This document shows, one piece after another, positions 2,193 through 52,419 of a stretch of 64,000 nt of DNA (positions are counted from its first letter, which is position 1; each line of letters starts with the position of its first letter). Under the pieces are notes generated by a model. The model did not search any database and had not been told where the DNA came from. It saw only the letters and a list, made by a program, of their open reading frames with translations. A program made the translations under genes and the position numbers. This DNA is from Lytechinus pictus (Eukaryota). The DNA lies in assembly GCF_037042905.1 (NCBI RefSeq), contig NC_087245.1:17422001-17486000 (forward strand). Direction: 5' to 3'.

Positions 2193-4962
2193 TCTTCTTC
2201 TTCTTCTTCAGGTTAAATCTGCCTCCTTCAGGATTGAAGATTCTTGCAGATGGTTTATTTGGCATGTGTGTATGGCCAGGTTTAGGTGTGCAGTGCAAAA
2301 TATATACAGGTGCAAGTAAAAAGTCCCATCTGATTTAGCTCTGGCCTTCCGCCAGTCTCAGGCGGAAGGCTTTTGGAGAAGAGGCATTGATTTTGTTGGG
2401 AGGGAGAGTATTCCATGCCTTGATCGTCCTTGGAAAGAAGGATTGACGATGGTGCTCTGTCCTGCAGTGTGGTAGCTGGTAGCCGTTCCCTTGTTGCTGT
2501 GATCGAGTTCTTGTTGATCCAGTGAGTGGTGTGATGTATTCTTCCACTGGGAAGCTGACAAGATTGTGATGCAGCTTGTACATAAGGACCAGTCTAGAAT
2601 CCTCCCTACGTTTCTGCAGTGTGGGCCATTCCAGTTCTTCGAGCATAGATGTAACGCTAGAGGTGTTGTGGTATCTGTTAAGCACGAATCTAGCTGCCCG
2701 CCTTTGGATCATCTCAATCTGGTGGATAAGACGATTGGTTGATGGATCCCATATCGAAGAACAGTATTCAACGAGGGGCCGTACTAGTACTTTGTAGGCA
2801 GTGGCTTTAAGTTCAGGCAGGTTGATGCGGAGGTTTCTGCGTAGGAAGGCAAGGGTGGAATTTGCTTTGCGGCAGATATTATTAACATGCTGGTTCCATT
2901 TCAGATCCGATGTTATTGTGACACCTAGATACTTGGAGGCAGCAGTTACTCTCAGTACCGGGTTGTTCAAGGTGTAGATTTGATTGGCCGCATTCCTCTT
3001 CCTCGTGACTCTGATGACCTCACATTTCTGGGTGTTTAGTTCCATCATCCAATTTGATGCCCATTCACTGATTTTGTCAAGGTCATCTTGGAGCTGTTGT
3101 GTATCTTGCTGGTTCTTGATAGCAAGATAAGTGATTGCGTCATCAGCGAAGAGTCTTACTGGGGATGAGAGTCTATCAGGCAGATCATTGATATAGTGGA
3201 TGAACAGGCAGGGTCCGAGGACTGAGCCCTGGGGGACGCCTGATATCACATCAATGGTTGATGAATGGTACCCGTCAAGGACTACTTGTTGTTTCCTATG
3301 ATGTAGGAAGCTTGAAATCCATCCATTGTTCTTATCTCGGATGCCATAGTATTCCAGCTTATGGAGCAGTCTTTGATGCCCGACCTTGTCGAATGCCTTG
3401 CTAAAATCCATGACAAGGACATCAGTCTGGAGGCTTTGATCAAGGTTCTTGTGAAGGTCAGAGATAAATCCCAGCAGTTGTAGCTCGCAGGACTTGTTTT
3501 GTTGGAAGCCGTGTTGCAGAGGATGAAGGATGTTGTTTGCACTGCTATGTTTCATTATGTTGCTGGCTATAATATGTTCAAGCAGCTTACAACAGATACA
3601 TGTGAGTGAGATGGGTCTGTAGTTTGATGGGTCTGTTCTGTCGCCTTTCTTGTAGATAGGCACTACATTGGCCTCTCGCCAATCGTGTGGTATCTGACCA
3701 GTGTTGTAAGAGATCCTGAAGATAGTGGTCAGAATTGGGGCGATGACATTGGAAAGCTTCTTTAGAACTTGAGGTGATATGCCATCAGGTCCTGGTGCCT
3801 TGTGAATCTTGAGGCTCTTCAGAAGTTTCTCCACACCATTGGTTGTTATGATGATCTCTGGCATGTCTGGGTATGGCGATGCATCAGGCAAGAGATGTGG
3901 CGGGACTGGCATTTCATTGGTGAAAACCTTCTGGAATTGCTGATTGATAATATCAGCTTTGGCAGTGGAGTCCGTCACTCTCCGTCCCTCAGATTTCAGC
4001 TCAGCTATCCCAGTGTTGTCCGTCTGGTTGTGCTTGATAAAACGCCAGAAGCGTTTCATAGAATTAAACTCGGCTGATTCCTCATCCTCTTCATCCACAG
4101 TGAAGATTGACTCAAGGTAATTCCAGTATGCTTTCCTGAGTTCAGCTTGGAGTGTACGCTTGGTGTTCTGCAGCTCTACCTCCATGTTGTGTGGGATGGG
4201 ACCCTGGTTGTTATTTCTGTGGTGCCTGAATTTCTTCCATACTCTGTCTTTCTTTTTGATGAGTCGTCTGACATGGTTGGTGACCCAGGGTAGGCTGCCT
4301 TTAGGGTGTGTCATTTTGTGGGGAATGAAGTTTTCTACTCCCTCCTTGATTGCGTTCTTGAAGGTCATCCACAAATCATTCAGTGTTGAAGTGTTGATTT
4401 TGCTATCAATCTCCTCCCATGCAGATATCATGACTTTTTCGAACTCCTTCCAGTCTGCCTTTCCGTAGAGCAGGACTTTTCTCTGCTTTGAATTGCGTCT
4501 TGTTGCTTTCAAGTCGACGATGATGAGAGGACAGTCATGATCAGACACTCCAGGCACCACTTGGCTATCAAGGACTAACGTAGGGTTGTTCGTGAGAATG
4601 AGGTCCAGCACATTTCGTCCTCTGGTTGGCTCTCTGACGATTTGCGTGAGGCCGCGATCCTCGATGATTGTGCCGAACTTCTGATGTAGGGCTGGATTCC
4701 TACAGTTGCCAATCACATGATCCTCCCAGTTCCAACCAGGCAGATTGAAGTCTCCAGCAACAATCACCGAGTGAGTCGGAGGAAGTCTGTTTAGTGACCT
4801 CTCAAGTTCAGTAAGGCTGTCTGCATCTCTTTCATGTGGTCTGTAAAATGCTGCAACATGCAGAGTCTTTGCTCCAGCCAGATCAATTCTACACCACAGA
4901 ATCTCACAGTCTGTCTCAAGTTCAACTTCCCTTACAGCCATGAATTCTTTTTTGGTTGCAAT
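2193..4962 (-). mobile_element. 5'-truncated CR1-type non-LTR retrotransposon
   Basis: (GAA)n tail at 2193-2209, ~125-bp 3' UTR, ORF2 with APE endonuclease (GDFNLP, LDLILTN, SDHD) and RT. The frame is open to ~4962, where it joins host repeat; no ORF1. Confidence 0.9.
2335..4941 (-). CDS. LINE ORF2 (partial endonuclease + reverse transcriptase), uninterrupted
   Basis: 868 aa; motifs KAPGPDGI, NYRPISLT, DFSKAFD, GVPQGSVLGP, LFADD, KYLGV, LVRPLVEY, IQRRAARFV, SFFPRT. The listed Met is internal; the N-terminus of the endonuclease is missing. Confidence 0.9.
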   Translation of the reverse strand: MAVREVELETDCEILWCRIDLAGAKTLHVAAFYRPHERDADSLTELERSLNRLPPTHSVIVAGDFNLPGWNWEDHVIGNCRNPALHQKFGTIIEDRGLTQIVREPTRGRNVLDLILTNNPTLVLDSQVVPGVSDHDCPLIIVDLKATRRNSKQRKVLLYGKADWKEFEKVMISAWEEIDSKINTSTLNDLWMTFKNAIKEGVENFIPHKMTHPKGSLPWVTNHVRRLIKKKDRVWKKFRHHRNNNQGPIPHNMEVELQNTKRTLQAELRKAYWNYLESIFTVDEEDEESAEFNSMKRFWRFIKHNQTDNTGIAELKSEGRRVTDSTAKADIINQQFQKVFTNEMPVPPHLLPDASPYPDMPEIIITTNGVEKLLKSLKIHKAPGPDGISPQVLKKLSNVIAPILTTIFRISYNTGQIPHDWREANVVPIYKKGDRTDPSNYRPISLTCICCKLLEHIIASNIMKHSSANNILHPLQHGFQQNKSCELQLLGFISDLHKNLDQSLQTDVLVMDFSKAFDKVGHQRLLHKLEYYGIRDKNNGWISSFLHHRKQQVVLDGYHSSTIDVISGVPQGSVLGPCLFIHYINDLPDRLSSPVRLFADDAITYLAIKNQQDTQQLQDDLDKISEWASNWMMELNTQKCEVIRVTRKRNAANQIYTLNNPVLRVTAASKYLGVTITSDLKWNQHVNNICRKANSTLAFLRRNLRINLPELKATAYKVLVRPLVEYCSSIWDPSTNRLIHQIEMIQRRAARFVLNRYHNTSSVTSMLEELEWPTLQKRREDSRLVLMYKLHHNLVSFPVEEYITPLTGSTRTRSQQQGNGYQLPHCRTEHHRQSFFPRTIKAWNTLPPNKINASSPKAFRLRLAEGQS

Positions 4963-5454
4963 GGGTCCCCTAGGTCCCCTTAGGTCCCCTAAGTACTAAG
5001 TACATCTACCATCCAAGTTTGGTTGAAAAGTGATCTAGGGTTGCAGAGTTATGTGTCATAAGAGAGTCTTGCACGGAAACTTTGACGTTGACCTGAAAAT
5101 GACCTTTGACCTTACCATGTGACCTCTGACTGCAGCATAACATGCAGGTCCCCTTAGTCCATCTACCATTCAAGTTTGGTTGAAAAGTGATACAGTTGCA
5201 GAGTTATGTGTCATAAGAGTCTTGCATGTAAACTTTAACGTTGACCTGAAAATGACCTTTGACCTTACCATGTGACCTCCGACTGCAGCATAACATGTAG
5301 GTCCCCCAAGTCCATCTACCATCCAAGTTTGGTTGAAAATTGACTTACGGTTGCGGAGTTAGGTGTCATAAGGTTTGTGACGGACGGACGACAGACGACA
5401 TTTGCCATTTGGATCCCTAAGTCAGCTTCCGCGTCCGTAACGTTGGGGAAGTAC

Positions 5455-26850: not shown

Positions 26851-29800
26851 CTAAACATCATCTGTCTGAATACAACTGGTGAGTGCTTCATCCATCAAAT
26901 CATCATCTATCCTACAAGGACTTCTGCTGATACTATCTGAACCAATACTCTTCACTGAGGCAGGAGATCTTCCTATTCCCAAAGGTGATTGGGCAAGCTG
27001 TCCTAGAGGAGAGTGTGCTACAGCACTTCTGGGCGATGTAGATCCACCCTCTGTCTGGGTATTGCTGTTCCTGCTATCCGGCCTAGGGGAGCGTTGAGGT
27101 TTCTGCTGCAAACTGCTTCTGGGAGACTGAGGCATGTCAATGATCATGCCAAATTCATCATCGCTCTCAACTGGGCTGTAGGGTGTTGGAAGTGCACACA
27201 CTTTCTTTGGAGGTGGGGGCTGACTACCTATTGGTGTTGCTGATCGCTTAGTTGTGGCCTTCGGACTTAAAGCACTTCCTGGGCTGGGGACACCGCTGGC
27301 AGATGGAAGCGGGCTTGGTGCTTTGGGTGAGTAAGCAATTACTGGTTTGGGAGAGCTGGCAGGTTTCATCAAAGGTCTGGGACTCACTACAGAGGACTTT
27401 GGACTTGGTACCATAGCGGGACTTGGCACCTTGAAGTCAATTCCTTGAGGTTTTGCTGTAGATACTTTAGTCACCTCTTCAGAAACTTCTTGTTTGTCTA
27501 TTCCCTTAACCTCTGGTACAATGTTCTTGGAATCAGACTTTCTTGGTTCATCTGCTTTCAATTTCTCTTTATCACACTGTGAAACAGATTTGATCAGTGG
27601 AGGAGTGACTTTCGGCTTTTGGACTGGCTCAGAGAGCTTTTGTTCAGATCTAATTGATGTTTTTCCATCCTGGCTTCCACTACTGAATGTAGGCTTCGAG
27701 TCTTTGGATACAGTTCTCGCGACAGCCGCTTTCGGAGACTTTGAATAGTCACCATCTTTGTCTTTACTTGGCCCATGGGAGTCCTTTCTTGCCCTTGGTT
27801 CTGTTGGTTTGGATTCTGGTTTCTTAGAAACGGCAGATGGCATCTTGGAGCTACCACTGTCAGAAATTCCTTTAAAATCTGGGCGCTGACTGCTCTGCTG
27901 AGATTGTGAGCTTGTTTCTTTCCCATTGTTTGGTTTAGTCTTCATCAACAAACTTTGATCTGCTTTCAATGGCTTCGGTATAGGAGCGACTGGCTTGCTA
28001 TCAGGCTTTGTTGTATCTGTTGTCTTTGGTGTTACAGATGATGGTTTCCTGGTTGAGTCTTGAGTTGGTTTGTTAGATGACACAGTCTGATGTTTGACTG
28101 ACGGAGAAGGGACGCGAACCTGGGATGAACCAGCTTGCCCTTTACTGATACTTGATGCAGAAGATCCTTGCCCAGAAACAGTAGAATGTGACACAAGATC
28201 TGAGTGCATGGCAAGTTGCACCTTGGTAACTTTTTGTTGTCCCTTCTCTGGTGACTGGTAAGTTGACAAGGAGTGGCTGAGAATGATTGGTCTGGTTCGT
28301 TGAACAGGGGATGCCCCAGGCCTTGGTTTAACAGGGCTACTCATGGATGTCGGAGTTGAACTACTGCTGCTTAATGGCGACGGTTTGCTTTGTTTCAGGG
28401 ATATATTTTTCCCTGTTGGACTGTTTGATCTTTTCTGAGAGCCAGTCAAGGGTGGGGTGCTTACTTTAGGAGGGCGAGACTGAGACAGAGGCTTCGGAGA
28501 TGATCTACCCTTGACTGAACTGGATCCTTGGCTGGCTGTAGCTGGATTGGGAGTCAATGCACTTGGTTTACTGCTCATTGATGGTGACGGTTGACGGGAA
28601 GGTAACTGATTGCCAGCAGATGATACTTTCGGAATTGTTGTTTTGGAACTGTCCAATTTCGTCAGAGGGATTGTAACAGTTTTGGTCTCCTTACTTGTAG
28701 GATAATCAGCTTTGGAACTAGCAACAGAATTGTCTTCTTTAGATGCTTGAGATTTATTGGTTCCAGTCTCTTCAGTCTGATCAGAGTCTTTAGTTTCCTT
28801 CTCTGGTGCATCCATGGTGTTCTCATCACTATTTCCTGATGTACCAGATCCAATCGCACTGAAGAGCCCTTTTCTTTCAACTTTTTCAGTCTTTTCAACC
28901 TTCTCAACTTTATCTGTCTTTTCAACCTTTTCATTTTTCTCCTTTATCTTATCAATGATGCCCATGAGTGAGAATTTTCTGTTTCCACGCATACCAGACT
29001 TTGGAGTTGCCAGCTTAGCAGAGTTTGGTCCTGCACTATTGGGTGTGCCAACAGATGATGGCGTCGGAGGCGATGTTACTGACGGTGCTGGCACCTTAAC
29101 ATTTGTAGGAATCACAAGAGGCGGTGGTCTATTTGAAAGAGTTGAACTTGTCTTAGTCCCTGTCACAGCAGGTGATGACTTCGACAAAGGAGCCAGGTCC
29201 ATTGGTGGGGGTGTGACTGACTTGGAAACGGGTAAAGTAGTTGCAGTAGCACAAGAAGTAATTGGGCTGGATGTGGTAATTGGTGCAGAAGTTGGAACTG
29301 AAGAAGTAGTTGTTGTTATGCTAGAGGATGTAGAACTTGTGGTTGCTGTAGATACCAAGTGGACTGTTGATGAGCTGGAGGATACAACTGTAGAAACAGG
29401 AGAACTTGAAATGACTTTTGTATTTGAACTTGAACTTGTGCTGCTTGAAGGTGTTGTAGTACTTGAACTTGTTGCAAGCGATGAAGTCTTAATAGAAGAA
29501 GTGACAGTGGTGGCTTGACTGCTTGATAATTTACTTGATGCTGATAAGGATATAGGATTTGTTGGTAGTTTTGATGTTATCCCAGCTGAAGTTTTTGGTA
29601 CAGGGCTCACTGTACCAGATGGCTTAACTTGTGAGCTCATTGTCTTTGTAACTCCAGTTGTTGGACTTGATACCATTTTGCTGGTAGCTTGAACAGCTCC
29701 CACACTTGCCTTGCAGGAATTAAGGCTTTGTATTGGTGTTGACAATGATTTTGAGAGAATATTTGGTCCTGTTTTTCGAATACCCTGGCCTACTGTCACT

Positions 29801-32400
29801 GGGGATCTGTTGCCACTTGAAAATGGTTTCCCTTGTCTCATTGTACCATCTGATTTCCTTCCTGATGGGTTAACTGTGCCAAAACGCTGTGTTGATACCA
29901 ACTTTTTGGTAGATCCCACTTTTGATGGATCTCCTTTACCCCACGCAGACTTCTTTGGAGAAGATGACATTAAAGTTTTATTTGAAGGTGAAGGACTGCC
30001 AGCAGTCTTTGGAGTAGTGAGGGTCTTGGTGTTTGGCAACTGTTTACCCTCTGATGTTTGCTTACTGATTTTTGGAATGCGAGGCATATTTGCCAACTTT
30101 GGAAAGAAATCAGCTATAGGTGACTTTGGAACAGGACTTGGTTTCTGGCCACCTTCAGTCGGTCGAATTTTCTTCATGTGCTCATTCTTTAACTTTGGCA
30201 CATGTGTCATGGGAGATAATTTAGTGATTCCCGTTTGTTTTACAGATGAGTGCTCAGATTTGACAACAGTTATGTCATGGCTGCCTTTAGATAGCTCTTG
30301 AGACATTACTTTGTTGGTGTGCTCTTCATGTCTGTGAGATGTTGGAACGTCCTTCTGAGGTTTTGGCAAACTCTCCTCTTTCACAAGCTTTGGTTCTTTG
30401 GGGATTTCAGTTTTAATTACAGGTGGCTCCGTCTTGGCAGATTTGACGATGGTCTCTACTTTCTCGGGTTGTTCAACCCTATGTTCTGACTTCACAGGAG
30501 GTTTCTCTTCTTTGGTTTCCCTTGCAACAGGATTTGGAGATGGAGTAGCGGAATCTCCACTTGTCATAGCTCTGATCTTGATTTTGGGAGCAGGACCTGG
30601 GTCTTTTGCCTTCACTTTTTGGTCTCTGTCAGGCTTGTGACGAATGGTTTTGAATGTCATTTTAAGTGGTTCCTCTTCATTGACAGCCATGGTTATGCTG
30701 GAATACTGTGCAACATCTTGACATGGTTCTGGGGAGGACTCACTACTGTATTCTGGCAGCCTTCTTTCTTTCCTGAGTCTTCCTGGTCTCCTAAGCTTCT
30801 TGGTCTTTGGAGCATCTGAATCAGAAAATCCTCCAGTATCCTTCAACCCCTTGCGTCCACGTTTCTTAGATTGTTTTGGCTTTTCAGACTGAAATGCAAG
30901 ACTGGACTCAATGAAGTTCTTGGGTTTGCCTTTGGACACTGGAACCCTTGGACGAGTTGCTGGCAATGACTGTGACAGGTTGGTAACACTTTGCATATTA
31001 GGCCCAGGTCGCCCTCTTTGAGCTGTGTGTATAGCTGGGATACTCATGCTCTTTGCAAGGTTAGCTACAGTCAGATCAAGTGCTCCTGCACCCATTTTCA
31101 TGTCTGTCCTTGTTTCAAGCCCAGCTTGGATGGCTGTAGAGAGTGGCCCTGGTGTCAAGGTTGAAAGAGAAACTGGATGAGGCAAGTCTGTAGAAGTTCG
31201 CTGTGGGTCATCAAAGTCTGAGCCTGTCGGAATACCCATACGGGCTATAGCTGAACTAACACTTGGTAAGCCACCAAAATCATCATCATTGTCAAACCCT
31301 GCAGCATCTTCATTAATGTCAAGAGAACCATATTGTGATCTAAAGCTGGATTGTCTATTCATTTCAGGAGAAATGTTTGACCGGGGAGGATCTGGCAACA
31401 AGTCTTCATGAAACATGTTCTTTGAATTTTGTGAGAATATGTCAGAGTCCATACTTGTTCTGGAGTGCAATGGATCACTCTTCACCCCAGCAGGTAGCTC
31501 ATCCATAGATGGATGTTCTGGTGTACTCAAAGTACTGTGGGACATTGTCCTGGGGGGAGCAAAAGTGGGAGTTGTTGGAACTGATGGAGTGCTTGGAGTC
31601 TTGGGGCTCTGACGAGGACCGACACTAGATTGAGAGCTGGTACTGTCTAATCGACAAGGTCGACCTCGCTTGGGTTTAGCAACCGGTATGATAGGGGCCT
31701 CAATCTCTGATAGAAGGGCTGAGAGCTCCCCTGTGTGCACTGCTTTGGGTGGGTCCATTGCATGGCTTCCCAATTTGTGAGGCTCTGAGAGTCTGTGATG
31801 AAGTCCTGGTGGGCGATGAGCATGGATATCATCAAAATCATGTTCCTCTTCACTCTGCTGTCGCTTTGGTGACTTGTCCACACTGACTGATCTTCCACGT
31901 TTTCCCCTGCGTATCATCCTTCCCATCGAGCCAACAGGTTGAGCAATGGCTGCTACAGGAGTAAGAGTATTCTGTTCCTGCAGAAGATTCATCAGCATTG
32001 GGTTCTTGTGAGGCTTTGGTCCGGATGCCAGAGGTGGTGACGACATAGGTGATGGGGACGGAGGTGGAATGGATAGAGAGGATGTGCTGACTGCAAGAGC
32101 CGCATGCTGTAGGAGACTTGCCAACATGGGATTCTGTGCCACCTTGGTGGGTTTATCTCCATGGATATCGAACCCCTCTCCATGAGGCAAGATGGCTGAC
32201 ATGGTGGTGGTAAGATCACTCAGGATACTATGTGATTGGAGTTGGTGTGAATAAGATGATTGGTGTGGGCGATGACTTGGAAAGAAAGTAGTTCCATGGC
32301 CACCACCACCTCCAAGGCCACTATGACGATGAATACCACTCATAGGATCAAAAACGGAACCTCCTGATGGACCAGAAGATGGAGCTGGTGGTAGGCTCAG
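26851..32400 (-). CDS. MED1: MED1 giant terminal coding exon (1849 aa; NR boxes + S/T/P/K-rich disordered region)
   Basis: Phase-0 CAG acceptor at 32403-32401, 19 codons upstream of the ORF-track Met at 32343; open to the stop at 26851. Confidence 0.95.
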   Translation of the reverse strand: MSLPPAPSSGPSGGSVFDPMSGIHRHSGLGGGGGHGTTFFPSHRPHQSSYSHQLQSHSILSDLTTTMSAILPHGEGFDIHGDKPTKVAQNPMLASLLQHAALAVSTSSLSIPPPSPSPMSSPPLASGPKPHKNPMLMNLLQEQNTLTPVAAIAQPVGSMGRMIRRGKRGRSVSVDKSPKRQQSEEEHDFDDIHAHRPPGLHHRLSEPHKLGSHAMDPPKAVHTGELSALLSEIEAPIIPVAKPKRGRPCRLDSTSSQSSVGPRQSPKTPSTPSVPTTPTFAPPRTMSHSTLSTPEHPSMDELPAGVKSDPLHSRTSMDSDIFSQNSKNMFHEDLLPDPPRSNISPEMNRQSSFRSQYGSLDINEDAAGFDNDDDFGGLPSVSSAIARMGIPTGSDFDDPQRTSTDLPHPVSLSTLTPGPLSTAIQAGLETRTDMKMGAGALDLTVANLAKSMSIPAIHTAQRGRPGPNMQSVTNLSQSLPATRPRVPVSKGKPKNFIESSLAFQSEKPKQSKKRGRKGLKDTGGFSDSDAPKTKKLRRPGRLRKERRLPEYSSESSPEPCQDVAQYSSITMAVNEEEPLKMTFKTIRHKPDRDQKVKAKDPGPAPKIKIRAMTSGDSATPSPNPVARETKEEKPPVKSEHRVEQPEKVETIVKSAKTEPPVIKTEIPKEPKLVKEESLPKPQKDVPTSHRHEEHTNKVMSQELSKGSHDITVVKSEHSSVKQTGITKLSPMTHVPKLKNEHMKKIRPTEGGQKPSPVPKSPIADFFPKLANMPRIPKISKQTSEGKQLPNTKTLTTPKTAGSPSPSNKTLMSSSPKKSAWGKGDPSKVGSTKKLVSTQRFGTVNPSGRKSDGTMRQGKPFSSGNRSPVTVGQGIRKTGPNILSKSLSTPIQSLNSCKASVGAVQATSKMVSSPTTGVTKTMSSQVKPSGTVSPVPKTSAGITSKLPTNPISLSASSKLSSSQATTVTSSIKTSSLATSSSTTTPSSSTSSSSNTKVISSSPVSTVVSSSSSTVHLVSTATTSSTSSSITTTTSSVPTSAPITTSSPITSCATATTLPVSKSVTPPPMDLAPLSKSSPAVTGTKTSSTLSNRPPPLVIPTNVKVPAPSVTSPPTPSSVGTPNSAGPNSAKLATPKSGMRGNRKFSLMGIIDKIKEKNEKVEKTDKVEKVEKTEKVERKGLFSAIGSGTSGNSDENTMDAPEKETKDSDQTEETGTNKSQASKEDNSVASSKADYPTSKETKTVTIPLTKLDSSKTTIPKVSSAGNQLPSRQPSPSMSSKPSALTPNPATASQGSSSVKGRSSPKPLSQSRPPKVSTPPLTGSQKRSNSPTGKNISLKQSKPSPLSSSSSTPTSMSSPVKPRPGASPVQRTRPIILSHSLSTYQSPEKGQQKVTKVQLAMHSDLVSHSTVSGQGSSASSISKGQAGSSQVRVPSPSVKHQTVSSNKPTQDSTRKPSSVTPKTTDTTKPDSKPVAPIPKPLKADQSLLMKTKPNNGKETSSQSQQSSQRPDFKGISDSGSSKMPSAVSKKPESKPTEPRARKDSHGPSKDKDGDYSKSPKAAVARTVSKDSKPTFSSGSQDGKTSIRSEQKLSEPVQKPKVTPPLIKSVSQCDKEKLKADEPRKSDSKNIVPEVKGIDKQEVSEEVTKVSTAKPQGIDFKVPSPAMVPSPKSSVVSPRPLMKPASSPKPVIAYSPKAPSPLPSASGVPSPGSALSPKATTKRSATPIGSQPPPPKKVCALPTPYSPVESDDEFGMIIDMPQSPRSSLQQKPQRSPRPDSRNSNTQTEGGSTSPRSAVAHSPLGQLAQSPLGIGRSPASVKSIGSDSISRSPCRIDDDLMDEALTSCIQTDDV

Positions 32401-35400
32401 CTGTATAAAATAGACAAGACAAATACCATTTGTAGCATATATCCAATCCAGTTCTAAAGGAGGACACCAACCTCATTTGGCAATTCAAACTGCTCATACA
32501 AGCGACTTTAACTTAGTGGTCTACAAGTAATCATGACATGAATTCCTTACATTACATTCTCTACTAATGTTTTCATGCAATGATAAAAAAAGAATTGTAA
32601 CAATTAGTATTACTAAGATAAAAAAAGAAGTTATTATTAATCATGAATAAGCAAGAAGGTCTGGAAAACATTCGTACTAGTTTTACTTGTTCATGATACT
32701 TACCGATTTCTTGGATTCATGCGTCTCCAGCCACTGCTCTGCTTTTTTCATGATGGCTCTCATGGTGATAGGAATGGAGAGACACTTCTGAAGCACCTTG
32801 GTTGCATAATCATCAGAACAGAAAGCTTCCTCACCAGGACCACTATGAAGCTTGGCTTTGACTGCTGATTGGTCAGTCAGGTCTAACTCCACTGTAAATG
32901 TACAATAAACAAAGATACCCTAAGAAATTGCTTAAACTTTATTATTATGAATCTAATATTTAAACTGTAAATATTCAACATTATTCTAATATATAAAAAT
33001 GGAAATGCTAACAATCAAAAGCAAATAAACATTTTGCTCATCTGATTCGCAGAAATAGTCATGCTAAATCTTATGTGTAACACTCAAATGCAGGTATTGT
33101 GCAATGCCTACAGATTGTTGCAAAGTCATCTTCTCGTCAATTACATGTTAAGTGGAATAGTTTCCCAAACTCCCCCCCCCCCCCAAACAAAAAAAAAGGG
33201 AACACATATGGGGGGATTAGCATGAATTGTGCTAATGAATATAAAACAGCTGATTATCAGCTGTAAGTATCAGCTTATATTTTTGTGGTCTGCATTTTAA
33301 TTGCAAATCTGTTACATTATGGGGATGATCAGCGGAAACAAGAGTATAGATCCCCTTTTCAATGGCTCTTCCTCTTTAGTATGCTTTCCTCTAAAATACT
33401 AGAAAGTATGATAAATATGACATGAATTTCAAATAAAAGGGATAGCGATTGTGCAATGAATAACTTAGTCTAAATTCTAGTTCAGTCTGGGATTTGAAAT
33501 ATGACCTCATGACCATGAAATCCAGTAATCAGATCAAGCTCTTCAACATACAGAGATAAGAGAAATGTGCTCACCACATGCAACTCCTTCCCTGGCTGGG
33601 TGTTCAAAGGTGACTGTGAGCTTCTGGTTGGTGTAGGGAGTTACTTCAAATAGCACACATTCAGCTGGATCTTAGGAACAAGAAAAGGGCAATAAACAAG
33701 TTTAACTAAACAATTATCACTGATTGCCCTCAATTTTCTGAGCTACAAATGCAGAAATCTCCAATTATTTGACCAATACGGTGCATTAGTTAGCTAACAA
33801 TATCATGTCTTTGGCCTCACCACATGCAGAATTTCAGTTTTTCTCGGTCTTCTTTGTATTGTCCTTGAATCCTTGGACGATCTACAGCCATTAAGAGTTG
33901 AAACCCCGATTAGAGCCTTAGCTAAACAAGGCTTAATTTTTTTGTATGTGCCTAAGCATGGGTTTTCTACACAATTGTCATGATTGCTGTCAATTGAATG
34001 AGCTTGAGGTGATAGCAATTCTTAATCATTCATGAAGAAGGGGAACGGGCAAGTGGTCATTCACACATTGTTTACAATTATATTTCAGACTCCTTACCAT
34101 AAAAAGCAGCGACCAATAGCAAACCTTTGAACATCCAATCAAGATCATTCATGAATTGTAAAATGTGTTTTAAAAAAATCAGTTACAGAGCACAGGGCTC
34201 TGTCTTACAAATTGCAATTGATTCAAATCAAACACATAAAGCAATTAACTACCCAGATTTAGATGAAATACAATTTGAATCACATTTGTATATCTCACAG
34301 CCCTTTGTAAGACAGAGCCAAACAATTGTGAAGGAGATACTCACCTTCGCCTTCTTTGTCCCTGACACAGCTGGCAATGAGAGTATTATAGACAGCCTGT
34401 TGTCTGAGAAGTGAGATGATCTTCACTACCGTGTTAGGTGCTGTGAAGGTGATCTTAGAGAGCAAGGCGCCTTGCATGTCTCTCAGATCATTAGGGTTGG
34501 TGCCATCATTGATGATATATGAGTGATGCTGATCAGGAAGTTCCTGTACAAATCAAGATATACAAAGATTTCAATCTCAGGTTAATTGATAATTAACTGT
34601 AAGACAAAGTAGAATGGATAACATGGATGTAAACACTTGGAATTTCTTTCAATTCTCCAAAACAATCTTTAGCTCAAGACCCAGAACTAATGCTAGACAT
34701 AAAAGGTGGTTTCCTTACTATTTCATCAGGGAATAAGATCAGCTTAAACAAGCATTTTATTCAAACAACTGTTAATTGATAATAAACTGTAAGACAAAGT
34801 TGAATGGATAAAATGGATGTAAACACTTGGAATTTCTTACAATTCTCCAAAACCATCTTTAGCTCAAGACCCAGAACTAATGCTAGACATAAAAGGTGGT
34901 TTCCTTACTATTTAATCAGGAAACAAGACCAGATTAAACAAGCATTTTATTCAAACAAATATCATTTGCGATGATTCATCTACTTCCTTCAATGTTCATT
35001 TTTTTTAAATCAAAAGGTGCACAAAGACTACACAAAATTCAAATCTCACTCATGTCAAATATGTAACCAAATTTCATAGTAAACTTGTTTCTATATACTT
35101 TTCTTTATTACAGATTAAACTAATCTGTACTTAGTGGGCAAAAGGCACTCTATAAAAGTGATTACTACGGCTGTAATTGGTATATGCAATTTAAATACCA
35201 CTCAATCTTGGGTGAAGTTACACCAGGAAGTTTTGGAGTACTCTTCTCTACTCTTAAGCACAACATAAAAGCTTTTCTTGTGAAGACCTAACAATAAGAT
35301 TTGTTCTAACTTAAATTTTGTTCGGAGAAGCCAATACTTGCACCCGAAAAAGCCCATGGTGAAGGGGTGAAGAATCCACCTCTCGGGCATTTGGTTGCTC

Positions 35401-44400: not shown

Positions 44401-47400
44401 TTTCATTCAATCACTTGAATCATTAAAACAAATTGAGAAATACAAACACCATTTGAAGTTGTTTTAAATTGAGTGGAGATGCAATGATTCAGTTGTAGGG
44501 CAACTGTGCAGGTCCCAAGTTAAACTTAAAGAAATGACGCACGAGTGATGCACTAGTTCCCATACAGGGTCTCGATAGAACCATTTATATATGTAAAACT
44601 GTATTCTTACTTGGTGATCTTGTTGTCTGTAACCATCATGGTAGGAGCTGTCTGAATCTTCCTCTGAGAAGCACTTTCTATACCAACTGTCACAGATAAC
44701 CCAAGGTCTTTGGGCAAAGGTTCTGAAATTGAAACATTGTCAGATCCAATATGAATAATAAGTAGGAACTCTGCCAAAGTTTAATCTCTTGGGAGCACAG
44801 AAATCTGTTTGACTTGATAGAAAATAATAATAACAACAATAATAATAATAATAATAAAAATAATAATAATAGTAAATTGACACAGACAACCTAATGTTTG
44901 CAGAGTCTTCTTGAAAAAATTGCTTCACATAGGCAATAATATGATTCTTGAAAAATGTATTAACATAGATTTAATAACGTTTACACGATATGAAATATTC
45001 GTGTTATATTCAATAGCAAGAATAAAACCCTTGGATTTCCTATTCGTATACACCGATGAAATATTGCTCTTTTTTTTTCTGAAGGATTTAGAGCAATATT
45101 CATTCCCATCAACCTGCACCAACATAGTGATATGAAATATGTAATTTGTAAAATGACTTTTGACAAACCAATTTTAAAATCAAAATAAGGTAAAATTTAC
45201 CATCTTAAAAACACATAAATGTGGAGCGTTGTGGCCCAGTGGATTAGTCTCCGGACTTTGAAACAGAGGGTCGTGGGTTCGAATCCCAGCCATGGCATAA
45301 TTTCCTTCGGCAAGAAATTTATCCACATTGTGCTGCACTCAACCCAGGTGAGGTGAATGGGTACCTGGCAGGAATTTATTCCTTGAAATACGTGTGCGCT
45401 GTAATCTTAGTAATTATGGCTGCCAAGCTACAGCTGGGGTAATAATATCCATGTCCTTTGGAGGCGCATAGAGACATTATTCATAATTGTGATATGCGCT
45501 ATACAAGAACTGTGTATTATTATTATTATTAAATGTATAAATAAACAAAGTAAATGTTTCAAAACCATGCACCATTTTTAATGCACAATTCAGGAATACT
45601 CTCTATTATCCTTTGCAGGAAAAAATGCATCAATGAATAATAGTTTTCAATGTGTCAGGTGTTTGCAAACACAAAATATCTAGAATGTTTGGGTGTATTT
45701 TTAGCAGTGATGTGTTTGACTCCATACAGGCCAATTCGAGTCAAGTCAGTGTCTGGCCTTTCTGAGTGCGAATCCAAGAGTAAACTGCACATGATCATAT
45801 ATATTATGGCTGCTATTTTTCTTAACTAACCTGTCAGAGAGAGTTCTTTCGTCTGCTTTTTTTCCACATCCAGCAAATCATATGGGGACACAAAGTATGT
45901 AAGGCGCATCAGATGACCTAAGCATTAAACACAATGACAATTCAATAAAGAAATGTTTTGAGTTCTGAGGGGATGTGGATTACGAATTCTATAACACATG
46001 TAATATATATTAAATCTATTCAGATGAACTTGATGTTGAGAGTAGACTTTGTCTCAAACAACCAAGTCCACTCCAACAAGATGATTTGAACAGATAGTGA
46101 CAGACCACGTACTTAAAAAGTCACCAAAATTTGATGTAAATCAAGAAAGTTATGACATTTTTAAAATGTAGCATAATTACAGATAAAAAATAATAATTTG
46201 CACAACACCTGCAATATGCAAATAAGAATTGTCATATTTTTTTATCATGAATAAAATATTAATATCGAAAGATTCGGTAATAAATAAAATCTATAAATTC
46301 AACAATGACAATCCCATGTGTTCACAAGTAAGTACATTTTCAGAGATGGAGAAACACAATTTAGGCCATCATCATTAACAAAAACACTATTGAAATTAAA
46401 TGGCAGAAAGCTTACCTCCTACTCTTGGTGTCAGATATCCTACAAAGCCCTTAGTGATATGAAGAAGAGGACTTCCACTGTGAATATGAATACAAATAAC
46501 ATTAGATACAAATGATAGCATAGATTTAAAAATAATTACATATCAAGCAACAACAAAAAAATAGGTTGGTAGAATTTATGACATAATAAAGAATAAAAAA
46601 TGTTTTTAAACCTGTATTAAGTTTGGGTAAATATAATGATTATCATTAATCTTCAAAGTCTGAAATTACTGTCAGATAAATACACTACTCAAAAAAAGTT
46701 AAGGACCACTTTTTAAAACGTACATAAAGATTTTATACAAGGTGTTTTATTTCTGGAAATACCTCAGTACAACTGTCCTAAATGTCCTTAAACACGCTGT
46801 AATCAATTTCACGCATGGGTGGTTTCAGTTGTTGCACAATGTCTCTCGCATCACTGCACATCCTGAAAAGTGGGCCCCGAGGGGTATCAGCTACCGACAT
46901 GAAGTGGTAAAAACGAATGTCTGAGTGTCTTTCAGGCAGTTCAGTAACGAGTGTGACCACCTCCTGCAGCAATAACGGCTTCACAGCGCTGTCTCATGGA
47001 GCTGATGAGGCGATTGATGTCTCTGACGTCCAGTGCATCCCATGCAGCCTCCAGAGCCACACCCAGCTGCTGCAGTCCAAGTGGATGGGCTTCGAGCTGC
47101 TCGAGACTCCTCCCCATCATGTCCCAGACGTGCTCTATCGGGTTTAAGTCCGGGAACCTCGCTGGCCACTCCATACGCTCAATCCCCTGGCCCTCAAGGA
47201 ACTCGGTCACCACCCTAGCTCGGTGGGCACGGGCATTGTCATCCATGAAAATGATGTTTTGTCCCACATTTTCTGCAAATGGCACCACTATAGGTTCAAG
47301 GACCTCATCCCTGTACCTCACTCCTGTCATTGCTCCCCCTGGGACCACGTAGAGACGAGTACGGTTGGCGTAGGTGATGCCTCCCCACACCATGACGCTG

Positions 47401-50400
47401 CCTCCCCCATAACGGTCATGTTCTGCAATACAGGGGTCTGCAAATCTCTCTCCTGGTCGCCTCCAGACTCTCGAACGTCCATCATTGTGGTCAAGGGAAA
47501 ATCTGCTCTCATCTGTGAACAGAACTCTACGCCATTGCTGTCTGGTCCATCTGACATGCTCCCGGGCCCAGTTGAGACAAATTCTTCTGTGAGCAGGGGT
47601 GAGTGGGACACACTGAGCTGGCCGTCTGGCATGCATATTGGCTCTGTGAAGTCGGTTACGGATTGTTTGAGTGGAAACAATCACTCCAGTTGCTGCAGCG
47701 AAGTCATTGTTGAGGCGGCGTGCACTGTGAAAGCGGTTGCGGAGGCTGAGATTCGTCAAGTAGCGATCATCTCTAGGGGTTGTCGAAACTGGTCGGCCAC
47801 TGCGGGGTCTCTCGGAGTATAGCCCCGTCTCTCGGAGTATAGCCCCGTCTCTCGGTGTCTTTGATTTGCTCTGCTAATGACACTGTGTGACACGCCCATC
47901 ATTCTGGCTACTCTTCGCTGACTGAGGCCAGCTTCCAGCATCCCTAGGGCTCTGGCTACATCTGTTTCACTTAGGTGGTGTCTTGGCATTGCTGTTGTAG
48001 GCAAGTTGTTGATTGTACAGACTAAAGACGGAAAATGCTTTGGAAGACACTTGTCTTATGGCCCACTGCAATGATGCCAGAGACATCATGAAAGAACTGC
48101 ATGTGTGAAATTGATGTCATTGTGTTTGATGGCATTCTGGACAGCTGTATCTTGGCATTGCTATTGTCAGCAAGTTGTTGATTGTAGAGACTAAAGACAG
48201 AAAATGCTTTGGAAGCCACTTTTGTACGGGCACATTGCAATGATGCAAGAGACATGAAAGAACTGCATGTGTGAAATTGATTTCATTGTGTTTGATGGCA
48301 TCCTGGACAGCTGTATCTTGGCATTGCTGTTGTCAGCAATTTGTTGATTGTAGAGACTAAAGACAGAAAATGCATTTGAATCCACATTTGTACCACTTCA
48401 CAATGGGCCCACTTTTCAGGATATGCAATAATGCGAGAGACATCATGCAACAACTGAAACCACCCATGTGTGAAATTGTTACAGGGTGTTTGAGGAGATT
48501 CAAGACAGGAGTGAGGTACAGGGATGAGGTCCTTGAACCTATAGTGGTGCCATTTGCAGAAAATGTGGGACAAAACATCATTTTCATGGATGACAATGCC
48601 CGTGCCCACCGAGCTAGGGTGGTGACCGAGTTCCTTGAGGGCCAGGGGATTGAGCGTATGGAGTGGCCAGCGAGGTCCCCGGACTTAAACCCGATAGAGC
48701 ACGTCTGGGACATGATGGGGAGGAGTCTCGAGCAGCTCGAAGCCCATCCACTTGGACTGCAGCAGCTGGGTGTGGCTCTGGAGGCTGCATGGGATGCACT
48801 GGACGTCAGAGACATCAATCGCCTCATCAGCTCCATGAGACAGCGCTGTGAAGCCGTTATTGCTGCAGGAGGTGGTCACACTCGTTACTGAACTGCCTGA
48901 AAGACACTCAGACATTCGTTTTTACCACTTCATGTCGGTAGCTGATACCCCTCGGGGCCCACTTTTCAGGATGTGCAGTGATGCGAGAGACATTGTGCAA
49001 CAACTGAAACCACCCATGCGTGAAATTGATTACAGCGTGTTTAAGGACATTTAGGACAGTTGTACTGAGGTATTTCCAGAAATAAAACACCTTGTATAAA
49101 ATCTTTATGTACGTTTTAAAAAGTGGTCCTTAACTTTTTTTTAGTAGTGTATAAGAGGATTATCGTAAAACAAATATTGTCAAAGATTCAATCTAAGGCA
49201 ACTTGTGAAAAGTCTGTGCTGCCTGCTGCGTCTTTTAGCAGGATTCCTGCAATAAAAATGCTATGCATCTTTTCATTGTAGCTTTGCTGCAGTCCCCATT
49301 ATGTTGTCAATATGGTGACTGTGATGACTTGCAATGAAAAGCTGCTTGCAGGATTCCTGCAGGAAAGATACAGCTCTGACTTTCAACAAGGTGCCTACAA
49401 TATGACACAGACAAAATTTACAATTAAACCATATAAAGTTTGGTTTCCAAAAAAGATGTCAAAATGTGCCGTGTTTCTTTAGAATACAATAATAAAACCA
49501 TTTCTCAATCATGGAATGGAGAAAAAAAATCAGGATCCAATATTGGTAAAAATATTCATCTTTAAATGCCAAAGTTAATCATGTGCAGAGACAATCTTAC
49601 CCTTGTTGGGATGCACCAAACTTGACACCACTGATTTTAAAGAGCGTATTAAGATCCATCTCTAACGCATGAAGACAGTTGAATGATGCCGTTTTCATTT
49701 TACTGTTAAGAAAGAAACATGGTGAATTTCAGTCAAACAAAAGTCCATACCAAAAAGCACAACACACCTGCCACCATAATTTCTAATGAAATAATGGTGA
49801 AATATTATTCAATAGAATTAAAATTGTGCGAGTATTGAGGCATATACATTATTAAACAAAGAATACGATTCATTTTTTTCCTTTTTTATGATATCACCAG
49901 AGAATTAATAGTTGATGATGCTTCTGTATCAGTAGACAATATCAGCATATTATATTAATTCATTGGAAGATTTGTAATTTGAATGGTAACAATTTCCCCT
50001 TCAAAACAAGTCATTACCATGATCAAATGGATCAATGTTTGATTTTACAACCGTCTGATTACAAAAATTACCTCATTCACCTGTTAGGGGGAGGGGAAAA
50101 GTATCTTCCCTGAAAGCTGCCAAAATTTCCCCATGTACTCTCCATATTTCCTTATTAAATAAGTACTTTGATTTAGTTGGAAAATACCAAAAAAATGAAG
50201 AATATTCCATTCTTTCTTGACTCTCAGAGATTGATTTCTGGAACGAAGCTCACCTGTCTCCTCCAAGCTGGTACATTTGACACAATCCTTTTAGATGCTC
50301 TGTGAATTCTTTAAAATCATTCTTCCTTAACACCTCACACATCTCCTCACAACTCTGTCAACAAATAAAACAATGGCAGTGTTAGAAATAATAAAAACAA

Positions 50401-52419
50401 AATAACAATATCAATGTTACTACTAATCATTANNNNNNNNNNNNNNNNNNNNNNNNNNNNNNNNNNNNNNNNNNNNNNNNNNNNNNNNNNNNNNNNNNNN
50501 NNNNNNNNNNNNNNNNNNNNNNNNNNNNNNNNNNNNNNNNNNNNNNNNNNNNNNNNNNNNNNNNNNNNNNNNNNNNNNNNNNNNNNNNNNNNNNNNNNNN
50601 NNNNNNNNNNNNNNNNNNNNNNNNNNNNNNNNNNNNNNNNNNNNNNNNNNNNNNNNNNNNNNNNNNNNNNNNNNNNNNNNNNNNNNNNNNNNNNNNNNNN
50701 NNNNNNNNNNNNNNNNNNNNNNNNNNNNNNNNNNNNNNNNNNNNNNNNNNNNNNNNNNNNNNNNNNNNNNNNNNNNNNNNNNNNNNNNNNNNNNNNNNNN
50801 NNNNNNNNNNNNNNNNNNNNNNNNNNNNNNNNNNNNNNNNNNNNNNNNNNNNNNNNNNNNNNNNNNNNNNNNNNNNNNNNNNNNNNNNNNNNNNNNNNNN
50901 NNNNNNNNNNNTGGCATTCTGCTCAAATCATTTGTGTGATTATAAATGCATGACTTGTGTACTTTATATCAACACCACAATGAAGCATTCCTCTTTATGT
51001 GTAAGATAATAAGTTTGAAGTACCAAGTTAACAAATATATCATGGATATGGATGCCATCCTACCACGTAAGATTTCCAATGTCTTTCTATACTATCTTTA
51101 ATGTATTAAGTGTCTTAACACTCTTTTTCTTTAATATCACAGTTTCAGACTGGTCAAACAATTCTTAGTCCAGATTTGAAAAAGCTATGTACAGGGGAAG
51201 GTGTGTGTTAAATTCAGGGGCGGATCCAGGATTTTCCAAAAGGGGGGGGGCACATTTTCTGAGGAAAAATTTGACAAGCAAAAAAAAAAAAAGGTCTTCA
51301 CTTTCAAAGGGGGGGGGGGCAAACTTCTGTTTTAACAGCATTTTTACATGTATAGTACATCAAAAATTGGACGAACTGGCATTAGACGAATTGGAAATAA
51401 ACCAATTAAAAATACACCTATGTACATGACAAGACAAAGGAACAGATAATTAAATACAACTCTTAACCTTACACAACGTTAACACCACAGAACTACTGTA
51501 CATGCTTACAACTACCAAGTTAACACTGAGCACATAACTCTTACCTGTGTATTACCACTCATGCCATGCACAACAATCACATCTTTAACACCACCATGAG
51601 GTGCTAGCTTCACTTCCACATAGAAGCAGTCTGAACTGAGGTACCCAATGTCAATGCTCCAGTTGGATTTCAACCTGTTGATAAATGTACATGTATTTAC
51701 ATTGTTATATTTGCCAGAATATGTTAAACATTGTTGTTCAAACATGACTAACAATTTCTTTATTTGTTGCCATTTATCCTTTTTCAGTAATTTTTTTTCT
51801 AAAATATACAAGTTTCTGATCCTTCTTCCAACTCTGAAATGGCACACTGCTTAAATTCAAACCATATACATGTACTTTAGGGTAAGAAATCTTTAGGGGT
51901 TACATATACACCATCAGCCCTTTGTGGCATACCAGAAAGGCCTACACAAAATATTCTGTACAGTGATGGAACTTTTATGCAGCCAACAACATACCCTTCC
52001 TCATGCTTCTTTGGACAAAATAATTCAATAACATTTAGCAACAAGACACTTCATCTCAAATTAAAAGGGATAACTACATACTTCGTTCAATAAATGAATT
52101 AGATATGTCAGTTGATCTTCTGTCTAAATATATACAACCCCTTTTCCCTAAAAAAAACAAAGCCCATCAACAGAGCTGCCAAGTTGTATTTTGCATTTTC
52201 AGTATTCTTATCCCCCAAAATCAGTATTTTGACAAAAAAAATCAGTATTTTTACCGTGTGAGATAAATATTTTGTATTTTCCCCCAAAAAAGTGTATTTC
52301 ATAATAAAATGCTTGGTGCACTTGCCCATCACGGGGCTCAAGCTGCATGCAAGCTAAAATGCGCACTGCTCTTGCAGATGAAAAAAAAAAACATTGAAAC
52401 TTGTGTATATCTCATCCTG

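Follow-up and report, generated by a model that had tools for sequence, protein, structure and literature searches.

A Tc1-like transposon with an inverted duplication of its 3' end in an intron of the predicted MED1 gene of Lytechinus pictus

The element and its host gene

The window analysed here is a 64-kb stretch of the Lytechinus pictus genome that contains a DNA transposon of unusual structure (Table 1). Protein matches identify the host gene, which is read from the minus strand, as an orthologue of MED1, and the element lies in its intron. The Med1 family of Pfam was matched in an exon ORF at 34298-34552 (E 3e-8), and this and the PDB match uphold a preliminary description of the locus that had put the element between two MED1 exons. 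A further candidate exon (49600-49728) was dropped since it had no support in the PDB search, and the placement of the element rests on those at 46399-46485 and 51515-51850.

The transposase matches DDE_3 (E 8e-18), HTH_Tnp_Tc3_2 (E 7e-16) and HTH_38 in Pfam and has a catalytic spacing of D-90-D-34-E; as judged from its sequence, the element is a DD34E Tc1-like member of the Tc1/mariner superfamily. A 20-bp tandem duplication splits the open reading frame, and this copy is non-autonomous. The duplication is private to it, a contig from run X1 being without the 20 nt at that place. The triplicate of about 166 bp, as judged from contigs of the same run that span the region with 0-3 differences, is a feature of the whole family.

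Table 1. Features of the element and of the neighbouring MED1 exons (positions in the 64-kb window)
Feature	Position	Strand	Remarks
MED1 exon immediately downstream (gene orientation)	46399-46485	-	~200 nt from element; top PDB match human MED1 residues 197-219
Left TA target-site duplication	46681-46682		Direct sequence reading; mirror of TA 49150-49151
Left arm, authentic 3' end of element	46683-47328	-	3' terminal inverted repeat (TIR) and non-coding sequence, then last 388 nt of transposase CDS
Transposase gene, DD34E, frameshifted	46941-47989	-	About 342 codons; ORFs 46941-47759 and 47756-48004
Left-arm private derived substitution	47155		Ser to Phe in WPARSPDLNPIE motif; G there in 9/9 related contigs
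Foldback loop	47329-48503	-	Rest of CDS, 5' UTR, inner 5' TIR
20-bp tandem duplication, frameshifts transposase	47807-47846	-	Repeat family D8, two identical units
~166-bp unit, three tandem copies	47918-48393	-	Repeat families D1-D3; spans start-codon region and inner-TIR-like sequence
Remaining inner 5' TIR	48405-48508	-	~105 nt; 88.6% complementary to 46773-46877 (3' TIR)
Right arm, inverted duplicate of 3' end	48504-49149	+	C-terminal CDS and complete 3' TIR
Breakpoint microhomology GACAG	48504-48508		Common to 5' TIR and inverted CDS; reverse complement of 47324-47328
Right-arm private substitution T	49142		Position 8 of right terminal repeat; G in 79/80 RNA reads and both X1 contigs
Right TA target-site duplication	49150-49151		Direct sequence reading
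Upstream MED1 exon within open frame	51515-51850	-	Weak Pfam Med1 match, profile positions 47-79

Structure of the arms and of the breakpoint

A repeat search of the window gave two inverted arms, 46680-47328 and 48504-49152, separated by 1,175 nt. At either side the outermost 3 nt consist of the target-site TA and one chance base, so the element proper extends from 46683 to 49149, a length of 2,467 nt. Its termini are CACTACT... and ...AGTAGTG, and the TA and terminal inverted repeats of Tc1/mariner are present. By blastn the arms are 99.69% identical across 646 nt, and a base-by-base comparison revealed two mismatches only, at 46690 vs 49142 and at 47155 vs 48677. An inverted repeat of this length and near-perfection is far outside chance. 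No second copy of the element was found by blastn within the 64-kb window.

The left arm passes uninterrupted into the remaining coding sequence at 47329. The right arm is made up of 388 nt encoding the transposase C-terminus (48504-48891, with the stop codon) and 258 nt of 3' non-coding and TIR sequence, and it stops precisely at the TIR terminus, which is followed by TA. The outer 90 nt or so of the 5' TIR are gone, and the inverted copy of the 3' end stands in their place, the cut lying at 48503-48508. In canonical copies, as represented by an independent contig and by the loose ends of RNA reads, the sequence past 48508 runs through 56 different letters before reaching the common terminal 30 nt; these last 30 nt are identical between the two types of TIR. 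The preliminary description, of a Tc1 element with its 5' TIR cut near 48503 and 646 bp of its own 3' end inverted in its stead, agrees with the repeat search, the blastn alignment and the base comparison alike. It had also given each arm 388 bp of transposase coding sequence and the 3' TIR, with two differences between the arms and a loop of about 1.2 kb, all of which the measured values reproduce.

When the element sequence was combined with the canonical 5'-end continuation from the contig and the RNA loose ends, the two partners of the junction were seen to share GACAG. By chance, an overlap of 5 nt or more would arise at the breakpoint with a probability of about 0.006. There is one private derived substitution in each arm, and private changes amount to about 0.2% in the loop, which suggests that arms and loop are similar in age.

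The assembly itself has to be considered. The locus could in truth hold a simple element, the inverted arm having arisen by mis-threading through repeat copies; the identity of the last 30 nt of the two TIR types would let an assembly graph enter either end from the flank, and no independent read crossing the junction was found. This explanation is nevertheless highly improbable. An overlap of 5 nt at the junction is too short for an assembler to invent, the right arm rejoins unique intron sequence exactly and in the correct orientation, and the one private derived base in each arm argues against an artefact. Junctions of the same kind also occur in independent assemblies.

Related rearrangements in the lineage

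Inverted junctions were present in three of the nine metagenome contigs of the same lineage that were fetched (L023, L025 and L030). Their breakpoints differ from one another, with an overlap of 7 nt in L023 and 2 nt in L025, and in all three the 3' ends point outward. In L023 the two arms show 4 differences over 145 positions, and its inverted junction is therefore not a library artefact. Judging from these contigs, rearranged copies with two 3' ends are a recurrent class in the lineage, of which the MED1 element is one member.

The MED1 junction itself was sought in several collections. A 60-mer across it, of which only junction-spanning words were considered, matched no sequencing run; with 2 words sampled this is a weak sign of rarity. 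An ORF of 173 aa spanning the junction had no entry in an exact look-up of protein records, and among 834 matches in a homology search none extended over its 45 TIR-derived residues, coverage being confined to the transposase part. A 24-mer just inside the breakpoint was unmatched in a scan of JGI metagenomes, and the transposase had relatives there at 45% identity or less, i.e., members of other families.

Proposed origin

The element is probably a passive, non-autonomous foldback derivative with two 3' ends, belonging to a young DD34E Tc1-like family, which arose by snap-back synthesis and was transposed afterwards as a single piece. While a copy of the element was being repaired, DNA synthesis would have proceeded as far as GACAG in the 5' TIR. 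There the nascent strand may have come off its template and annealed to the complementary CTGTC, which lies 1.18 kb back within the transposase gene, to prime synthesis again. It would then have copied the 3' end in reverse, up to the terminal repeat, leaving a composite with a complete 3' TIR at either end. This composite could have been excised and reinserted as one unit, by transposase from other copies, into a TA of the MED1 intron, and one substitution in each arm and the frameshifting duplication in the transposase gene would have followed. The right arm ends at the TIR terminus and is followed by TA, as expected of transposase-mediated integration of a composite. The TA flanks are silent on history, and independent reads or contigs across 48503/48504 were not found, so that for this particular junction we only infer movement as a unit.

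The same structure could have been formed in situ, by two close insertions in opposite orientation within the intron and loss of the intervening DNA through microhomology-mediated end joining. At this locus the expected trace of such a joining deletion is the same as that of snap-back synthesis. The family's copies agree with one another to 99% or more, and 2 differences in 646 nt are therefore no less compatible with separate copies; GACAG is equally compatible with end joining and with template switching, and the TA flanks do not discriminate. This origin is unlikely, however, for it demands two insertions in an intron of roughly 0.7 kb as well as a deletion, and the 3'-ends-outward layout is found again, with different breakpoints, in samples unrelated to this one, as would be expected of a process inherent in the element.

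Transcription and editing of the family

PolyA RNA reads from three runs, about 4,000 million letters, were aligned to 47329-49800, a stretch that includes one arm. No reads came from the locus, depth on its own flank being zero in these samples, where polyA selection captures little intron RNA and the runs possibly represent another species. Every RNA read that crossed a flank went to some other insertion site, and of 80 RNA reads no more than 1 could have the private T at 49142. The Tc1 family is transcribed in the polyA samples, with canonical transcripts among those of organism H. Family transcripts also include derivatives with internal deletions (joints 47423/48496, 47451/48387 and 47198/48240), deletions of a kind that abortive gap repair usually produces. 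An RNA joint between 48240 and 48634, apparently on opposite strands, had been a candidate for a second foldback; it was rejected as a plain internal deletion of 47199-48239 on comparison with the canonical joint between 47329 and 48504.

In run X24 the changes in family RNA were strongly skewed, with 28 A>G and 23 T>C vs 5 G>A and 2 C>T. They were grouped in multiply changed reads, were located in the TIR regions and were absent from the X1 contigs (organism A). G was depleted as the 5' neighbour of the changed sites (1 of 25 vs 15 of 93 in the background). By their sequence signature the A>G clusters appear ADAR-like, and they indicate the formation of TIR dsRNA in the family. In these reads, which came from other copies, the 40 changed sites with the best support all lay outside 48470-48952, an interval that contains the coding portion of the arm.

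Since the element lies inside the MED1 intron, MED1 pre-mRNA would carry a foldback of about 650 bp, as the preliminary description had anticipated; in the predicted fold 645 of the 646 arm positions pair with their mirror partner, at a duplex energy of about -1372 kcal/mol. On transcription of MED1 the intron RNA would fold into this 646-bp stem. In view of the ADAR-like clusters in the family TIRs, this hairpin RNA would most probably be hyper-edited from A to I and lost with the excised intron.

The preliminary description had gone further and suggested a silencer like Mu killer of maize, whereby a hairpin driven by MED1 would be diced and the resulting small RNAs would silence the Tc1 family as a whole in trans. 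The element does have one feature of such a locus, an inverted duplication of part of itself with 646-nt arms that are 99.7% alike. The predicted stem is very strong, and it takes in 388 nt of coding sequence for which a canonical copy offers no intramolecular pairing partner. Broad expression of the host gene may be expected of MED1, and RNAi is set off in C. elegans by dsRNA from read-through of Tc1 TIRs (Sijen and Plasterk, 2003, cited in the review PMC3878927). This suggestion found no support all the same: in the three polyA runs the family was expressed and no transcript of the locus was seen, and similar rearrangements occur in the three metagenome contigs described above, which speaks against a special standing of this copy. 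Editing of dsRNA by ADAR-type enzymes tends to counter dicing, and pairs of inverted repeats are common in animal introns without silencer activity. Trans-silencing by this locus is thus very unlikely.

Significance

Taken alone, the MED1 locus represents an ordinary by-product of transposition by cut and paste. Together with the related contigs it suggests that in a marine animal a young, transcribed Tc1 lineage gives rise again and again to long hairpin derivatives, some of them in introns of housekeeping genes. Such loci form a natural series for asking what becomes of long intronic transposon hairpins in a deuterostome that is not a model organism: dicing, entry into the piRNA pathway, or no more than editing by ADAR. 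The series also bears on the question why duplication involves the 3' ends. RNA of this locus could be told from the remaining RNA of the family by its private bases, A at 47155 and T at 49142.

A broader proposal is that the lineage regularly converts itself to mobile foldbacks with two 3' ends, which in transcribed introns would jointly be a source of dsRNA for RNAi or piRNA defence against the family. We regard this as decidedly unlikely. If true, it would represent a self-generated brake, an animal counterpart of Mu killer that arises repeatedly and not once.

Comparison with known systems

In the maize work attributed to Slotkin et al. in 2005, the Mu killer hairpin transcript, its siRNAs and heritable silencing are all said to have been demonstrated, whereas the MED1 element is known from its sequence. 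Both are partial inverted duplications of an autonomous DNA transposon, MuDR in the case of Mu killer, from which a host promoter could transcribe a long hairpin.

The Goblin MITE of Aedes aegypti was derived from the Tc1/mariner element Ozma by inverse duplication of 3' subterminal sequence, with a microhomology of 6 bp, and its authors proposed template switching in gap repair (PMC3814204). The MED1 element resembles it in the inverse duplication, in the microhomology at the breakpoint (5 bp here) and in the explanation offered, namely template switching during gap repair and subsequent mobilisation in trans. Goblin, however, is a miniature, multicopy element with 54-bp TIRs, while the MED1 element retains nearly the whole transposase gene, has 646-nt arms and was without a second copy of its junction in the searches of runs, protein records and JGI metagenomes.

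In the C. elegans work on Tc1 cited above, host-driven read-through of a Tc1-type element yields intramolecular dsRNA, as is predicted for the MED1 element. The duplex there is that of the 54-bp TIRs of normal copies, in contrast to the predicted 646-bp duplex with coding sequence that the rearrangement created here.

Other non-autonomous elements with long TIRs or foldback structure include Tc7, which is mobilised by Tc1, and the Galileo/FB type (PMC3814204; Galileo diversity, PMC4168063). They share with the MED1 element long inverted arms, termini recognisable by a transposase and the need for transposase in trans. They differ in being established multicopy families with non-coding arms, whereas of the MED1 element one copy has been observed, and part of the transposase gene lies within its arms.

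Structure of the element

An inverted-repeat search of the window returned two long arms flanking a central loop (see table). On each side the outermost three positions comprise the TA target duplication and one base that happens to match; the element itself thus occupies 46683-49149 and is 2,467 nt long. Its left arm is its own 3′ end and its right arm the inverted duplicate. Position-by-position comparison showed two mismatches between the arms, 46690 against 49142 and 47155 against 48677, and blastn gave 99.69% identity over 646 nt, with no additional copy of the element within the window. The preliminary description, which had proposed an inverted repeat with 646-bp arms, a loop of about 1.2 kb and two differences, is exactly reproduced by these three comparisons. 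The sequence from 48504 onward likewise agrees with its reading of a 5′ TIR cut at about 48503, with the element's own inverted 3′ end (388 bp of transposase coding sequence and the 3′ TIR) in its place.

The transposase contains the Pfam domains DDE_3, HTH_Tnp_Tc3_2 and HTH_38, and the D-90-D-34-E catalytic spacing places the element among DD34E Tc1-like transposons. With these domains and this spacing, its TIRs and its TA duplication, it fits that group throughout. The element is non-autonomous. The tandem units upstream of the start codon are a family feature, since they are spanned by assembled contigs of run X1 (organism A). The 20-bp duplication is absent from the 1,498-nt X1 contig. Near the transposase C-terminus some family copies carry a 6-nt in-frame deletion at 48865 (6 of 17 reads of polyA RNA run X23). 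The junction also creates a predicted open reading frame of 173 codons (48370-48891, plus strand, antisense to MED1), made of 45 TIR-derived codons and the last 128 of the transposase; it includes the second D and the E and lacks the DNA-binding domain. Exact look-up of this frame in protein records gave no match, and none of its homologues covered the TIR-derived part.

Features of the element and its host gene in the window, with inverted junctions of related metagenome contigs
Feature	Position	Details
Inverted arms	46680-47328 and 48504-49152	1,175 nt between; inverted-repeat search
Right arm	from 48504	reverse complement of 46683-47328; 388 nt C-terminal coding + 258 nt 3′ non-coding/TIR
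Transposase gene	47989 to stop codon 46941-46943	minus strand
Perfect 20-bp tandem duplication	47807-47846	splits transposase gene
Three tandem ~166-bp units	47918-48393	upstream of start codon; start-codon/5′ UTR region
Inner ~105 nt of 5′ TIR	48405-48508	remnant 88.6% complementary to 3′ TIR
MED1 last exon	26854-32472	open frame; very large, serine/proline-rich
MED1 exon match	34298-34552	Pfam Med1, E 3e-8
MED1 exon	46399-46485	best match among solved structures: human MED1 residues 197-219
MED1 open frame	51515-51850	weak Pfam Med1 match
L023 (Tara Oceans)	1-756	46867->47010 then 47309->46693; GATGAGG (7 nt) shared at joint
L025 (other ENA metagenome)	1-1006	47428->47590 then 47356->46919; 2-nt overlap
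L030 (Tara Oceans)	1-836	47212->47424, short 5′-region piece, then 47246->46691

Host gene

The host gene is the MED1 orthologue, on the minus strand, and its exon matches place the element in an intron. The location between two MED1 exons that had been claimed for it is confirmed by the Pfam Med1 matches and the structural match of the neighboring exon. A 3′ splice site lies about 200 nt downstream of the element, and the intact gene copy is oriented as MED1. The interval holding this intron contains a run of N (50433-50911). A candidate MED1 exon at 49600-49728 received no support from the structure search. Elsewhere in the window, an 886-aa open frame at 2338-4995 (minus strand), with Exo_endo_phos endonuclease and RVT_1 domains, is a LINE-type retrotransposon fragment.

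Breakpoint and origin of the foldback

The canonical structure was obtained by aligning X1 contigs and the raw reads of three polyA RNA runs from organism H to 47329-49800. In the 1,498-nt X1 contig, 48504 is joined to 47329 on opposite strands, which is the ordinary continuity of the transposase gene. A 251-nt X1 contig follows 48344-48508 without difference, then has 56 other letters and ends in 30 nt common to 49116-49145; loose ends of RNA reads at 48508 continue in the same way. Together these indicate that the canonical 5′ TIR continues through GACAG (48504-48508). These five letters also open the inverted arm, where they are the reverse complement of 47324-47328, giving a microhomology of 5 nt (P = 0.006 for an overlap of at least 5 nt at random breakpoints in the element).

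Misassembly would account for the junction, and no independent read across 48503/48504 is shown; a run search with two sampled words of a junction-only 60-mer listed no sequencing run. It is nevertheless very improbable. A junction formed from five shared bases is beyond what an assembler can create, unique intron sequence resumes precisely after the right arm, and each arm bears one private, derived change, as differences from the family reveal. Position 49142 is T in the window and G in 79 of 80 RNA reads and both X1 contigs; 47155 is A against G in all nine related contigs and alters a conserved serine of the WPARSPDLNPIE motif. Private changes are of similar density in the loop, where 47579, 47846 and 48030 differ from X1 and from the reads.

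Internal-deletion derivatives are classic products of abortive gap repair. Such derivatives of this family are expressed in organism H, with RNA joints at 47423/48496, 47451/48387 (with TTT filler) and 47198/48240. The MITE Goblin of Aedes descends from the Tc1/mariner element Ozma, whose 3′ subterminal sequence was duplicated in inverse orientation at a 6-bp microhomology; the authors of that study attributed this to template switching in gap repair (PMC3814204). Microhomology-guided template switching is also the favored model for sequence capture by animal TIR elements (PMC8277862). By analogy, the origin of the present element fits the Ozma/Goblin scheme on a larger scale: after a snap-back or strand switch at GACAG, the 3′ end would have been copied as far as the terminus. 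The composite would later have integrated in the MED1 intron. It most likely did so as a unit, through transposase from other copies, because the right arm stops exactly at the TIR terminus and is followed by TA. Two nearby insertions in opposite orientation, followed by a microhomology-mediated deletion, are a possible alternative.

Expression, folding and editing

The foldback of about 650 bp anticipated for MED1 pre-mRNA is upheld as a predicted fold. In minus-strand (MED1-sense) RNA of the element, 645 of the 646 arm positions are predicted to pair with their mirror partners, with an MFE of -1711.6 kcal/mol; the arm duplex alone comes to about -1372. The polyA runs are uninformative on this locus, since depth at 49155-49652 is zero in about 4,000 million letters from organism H, which may be another species than that of the window, and all reads leaving the right terminus enter other flanks. 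The Tc1 family is transcribed from many sites.

In run X24 there were 28 A>G and 23 T>C changes against 5 G>A and 2 C>T (51 versus 7), and X22 and X23 were skewed similarly. The changed sites cluster in the TIR regions at 48402-48469 and 49003-49092, several per read; none of the best-supported 40 of 74 lay between 48470 and 48952, and the clusters are absent from the X1 contigs. G as 5′ neighbor of the changed A is depleted (1/25 versus 15/93). The changes in these RNA reads look like ADAR hyper-editing of duplexes formed either between TIRs or between sense and antisense strands. We infer that MED1 hairpin RNA would be edited too. Dicing of the hairpin into silencing small RNAs is an unsupported possibility.

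Related elements and comparison with known systems

The foldback form is not unique to this element. Nine ENA/JGI metagenome contigs encoding close relatives of the transposase C-terminus (78-99% DNA identity) were compared, and three of them (L023, L025 and L030) have inverted junctions with 3′ ends outward and differing breakpoints. The arms of L023, 145 nt long, differ at 4 positions. The apparent 3′ bias is partly one of ascertainment, since the search started from the C-terminal portion of the transposase. A palindrome of 90 nt (89% self-complementary) occupies 325-414 of contig L027; a truncated transposase from a related subfamily lies downstream of it. Of the sampled 31-mers of 48200-48800, a fraction of 0.86-0.95 occurred in runs with six coded organism labels (A-F), and 0.26-0.91 in marine and echinoderm metagenome runs. 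Near-identical family sequence across organisms reflects either close relatives or recent horizontal spread.

The interest of the element is modest and lies mainly in its class, less in this locus. Mu killer, the model for its proposed role as a silencing locus, is defined by an inverted partial duplication, a hairpin transcript, siRNAs and trans-silencing; of these, the first is established for this element and the other three are predictions. In the inverted duplication of its 3′ end and in the breakpoint microhomology it resembles foldback derivatives of the Goblin type; Goblin itself is multicopy, and no second copy of this particular junction came up in the run search or in protein records.
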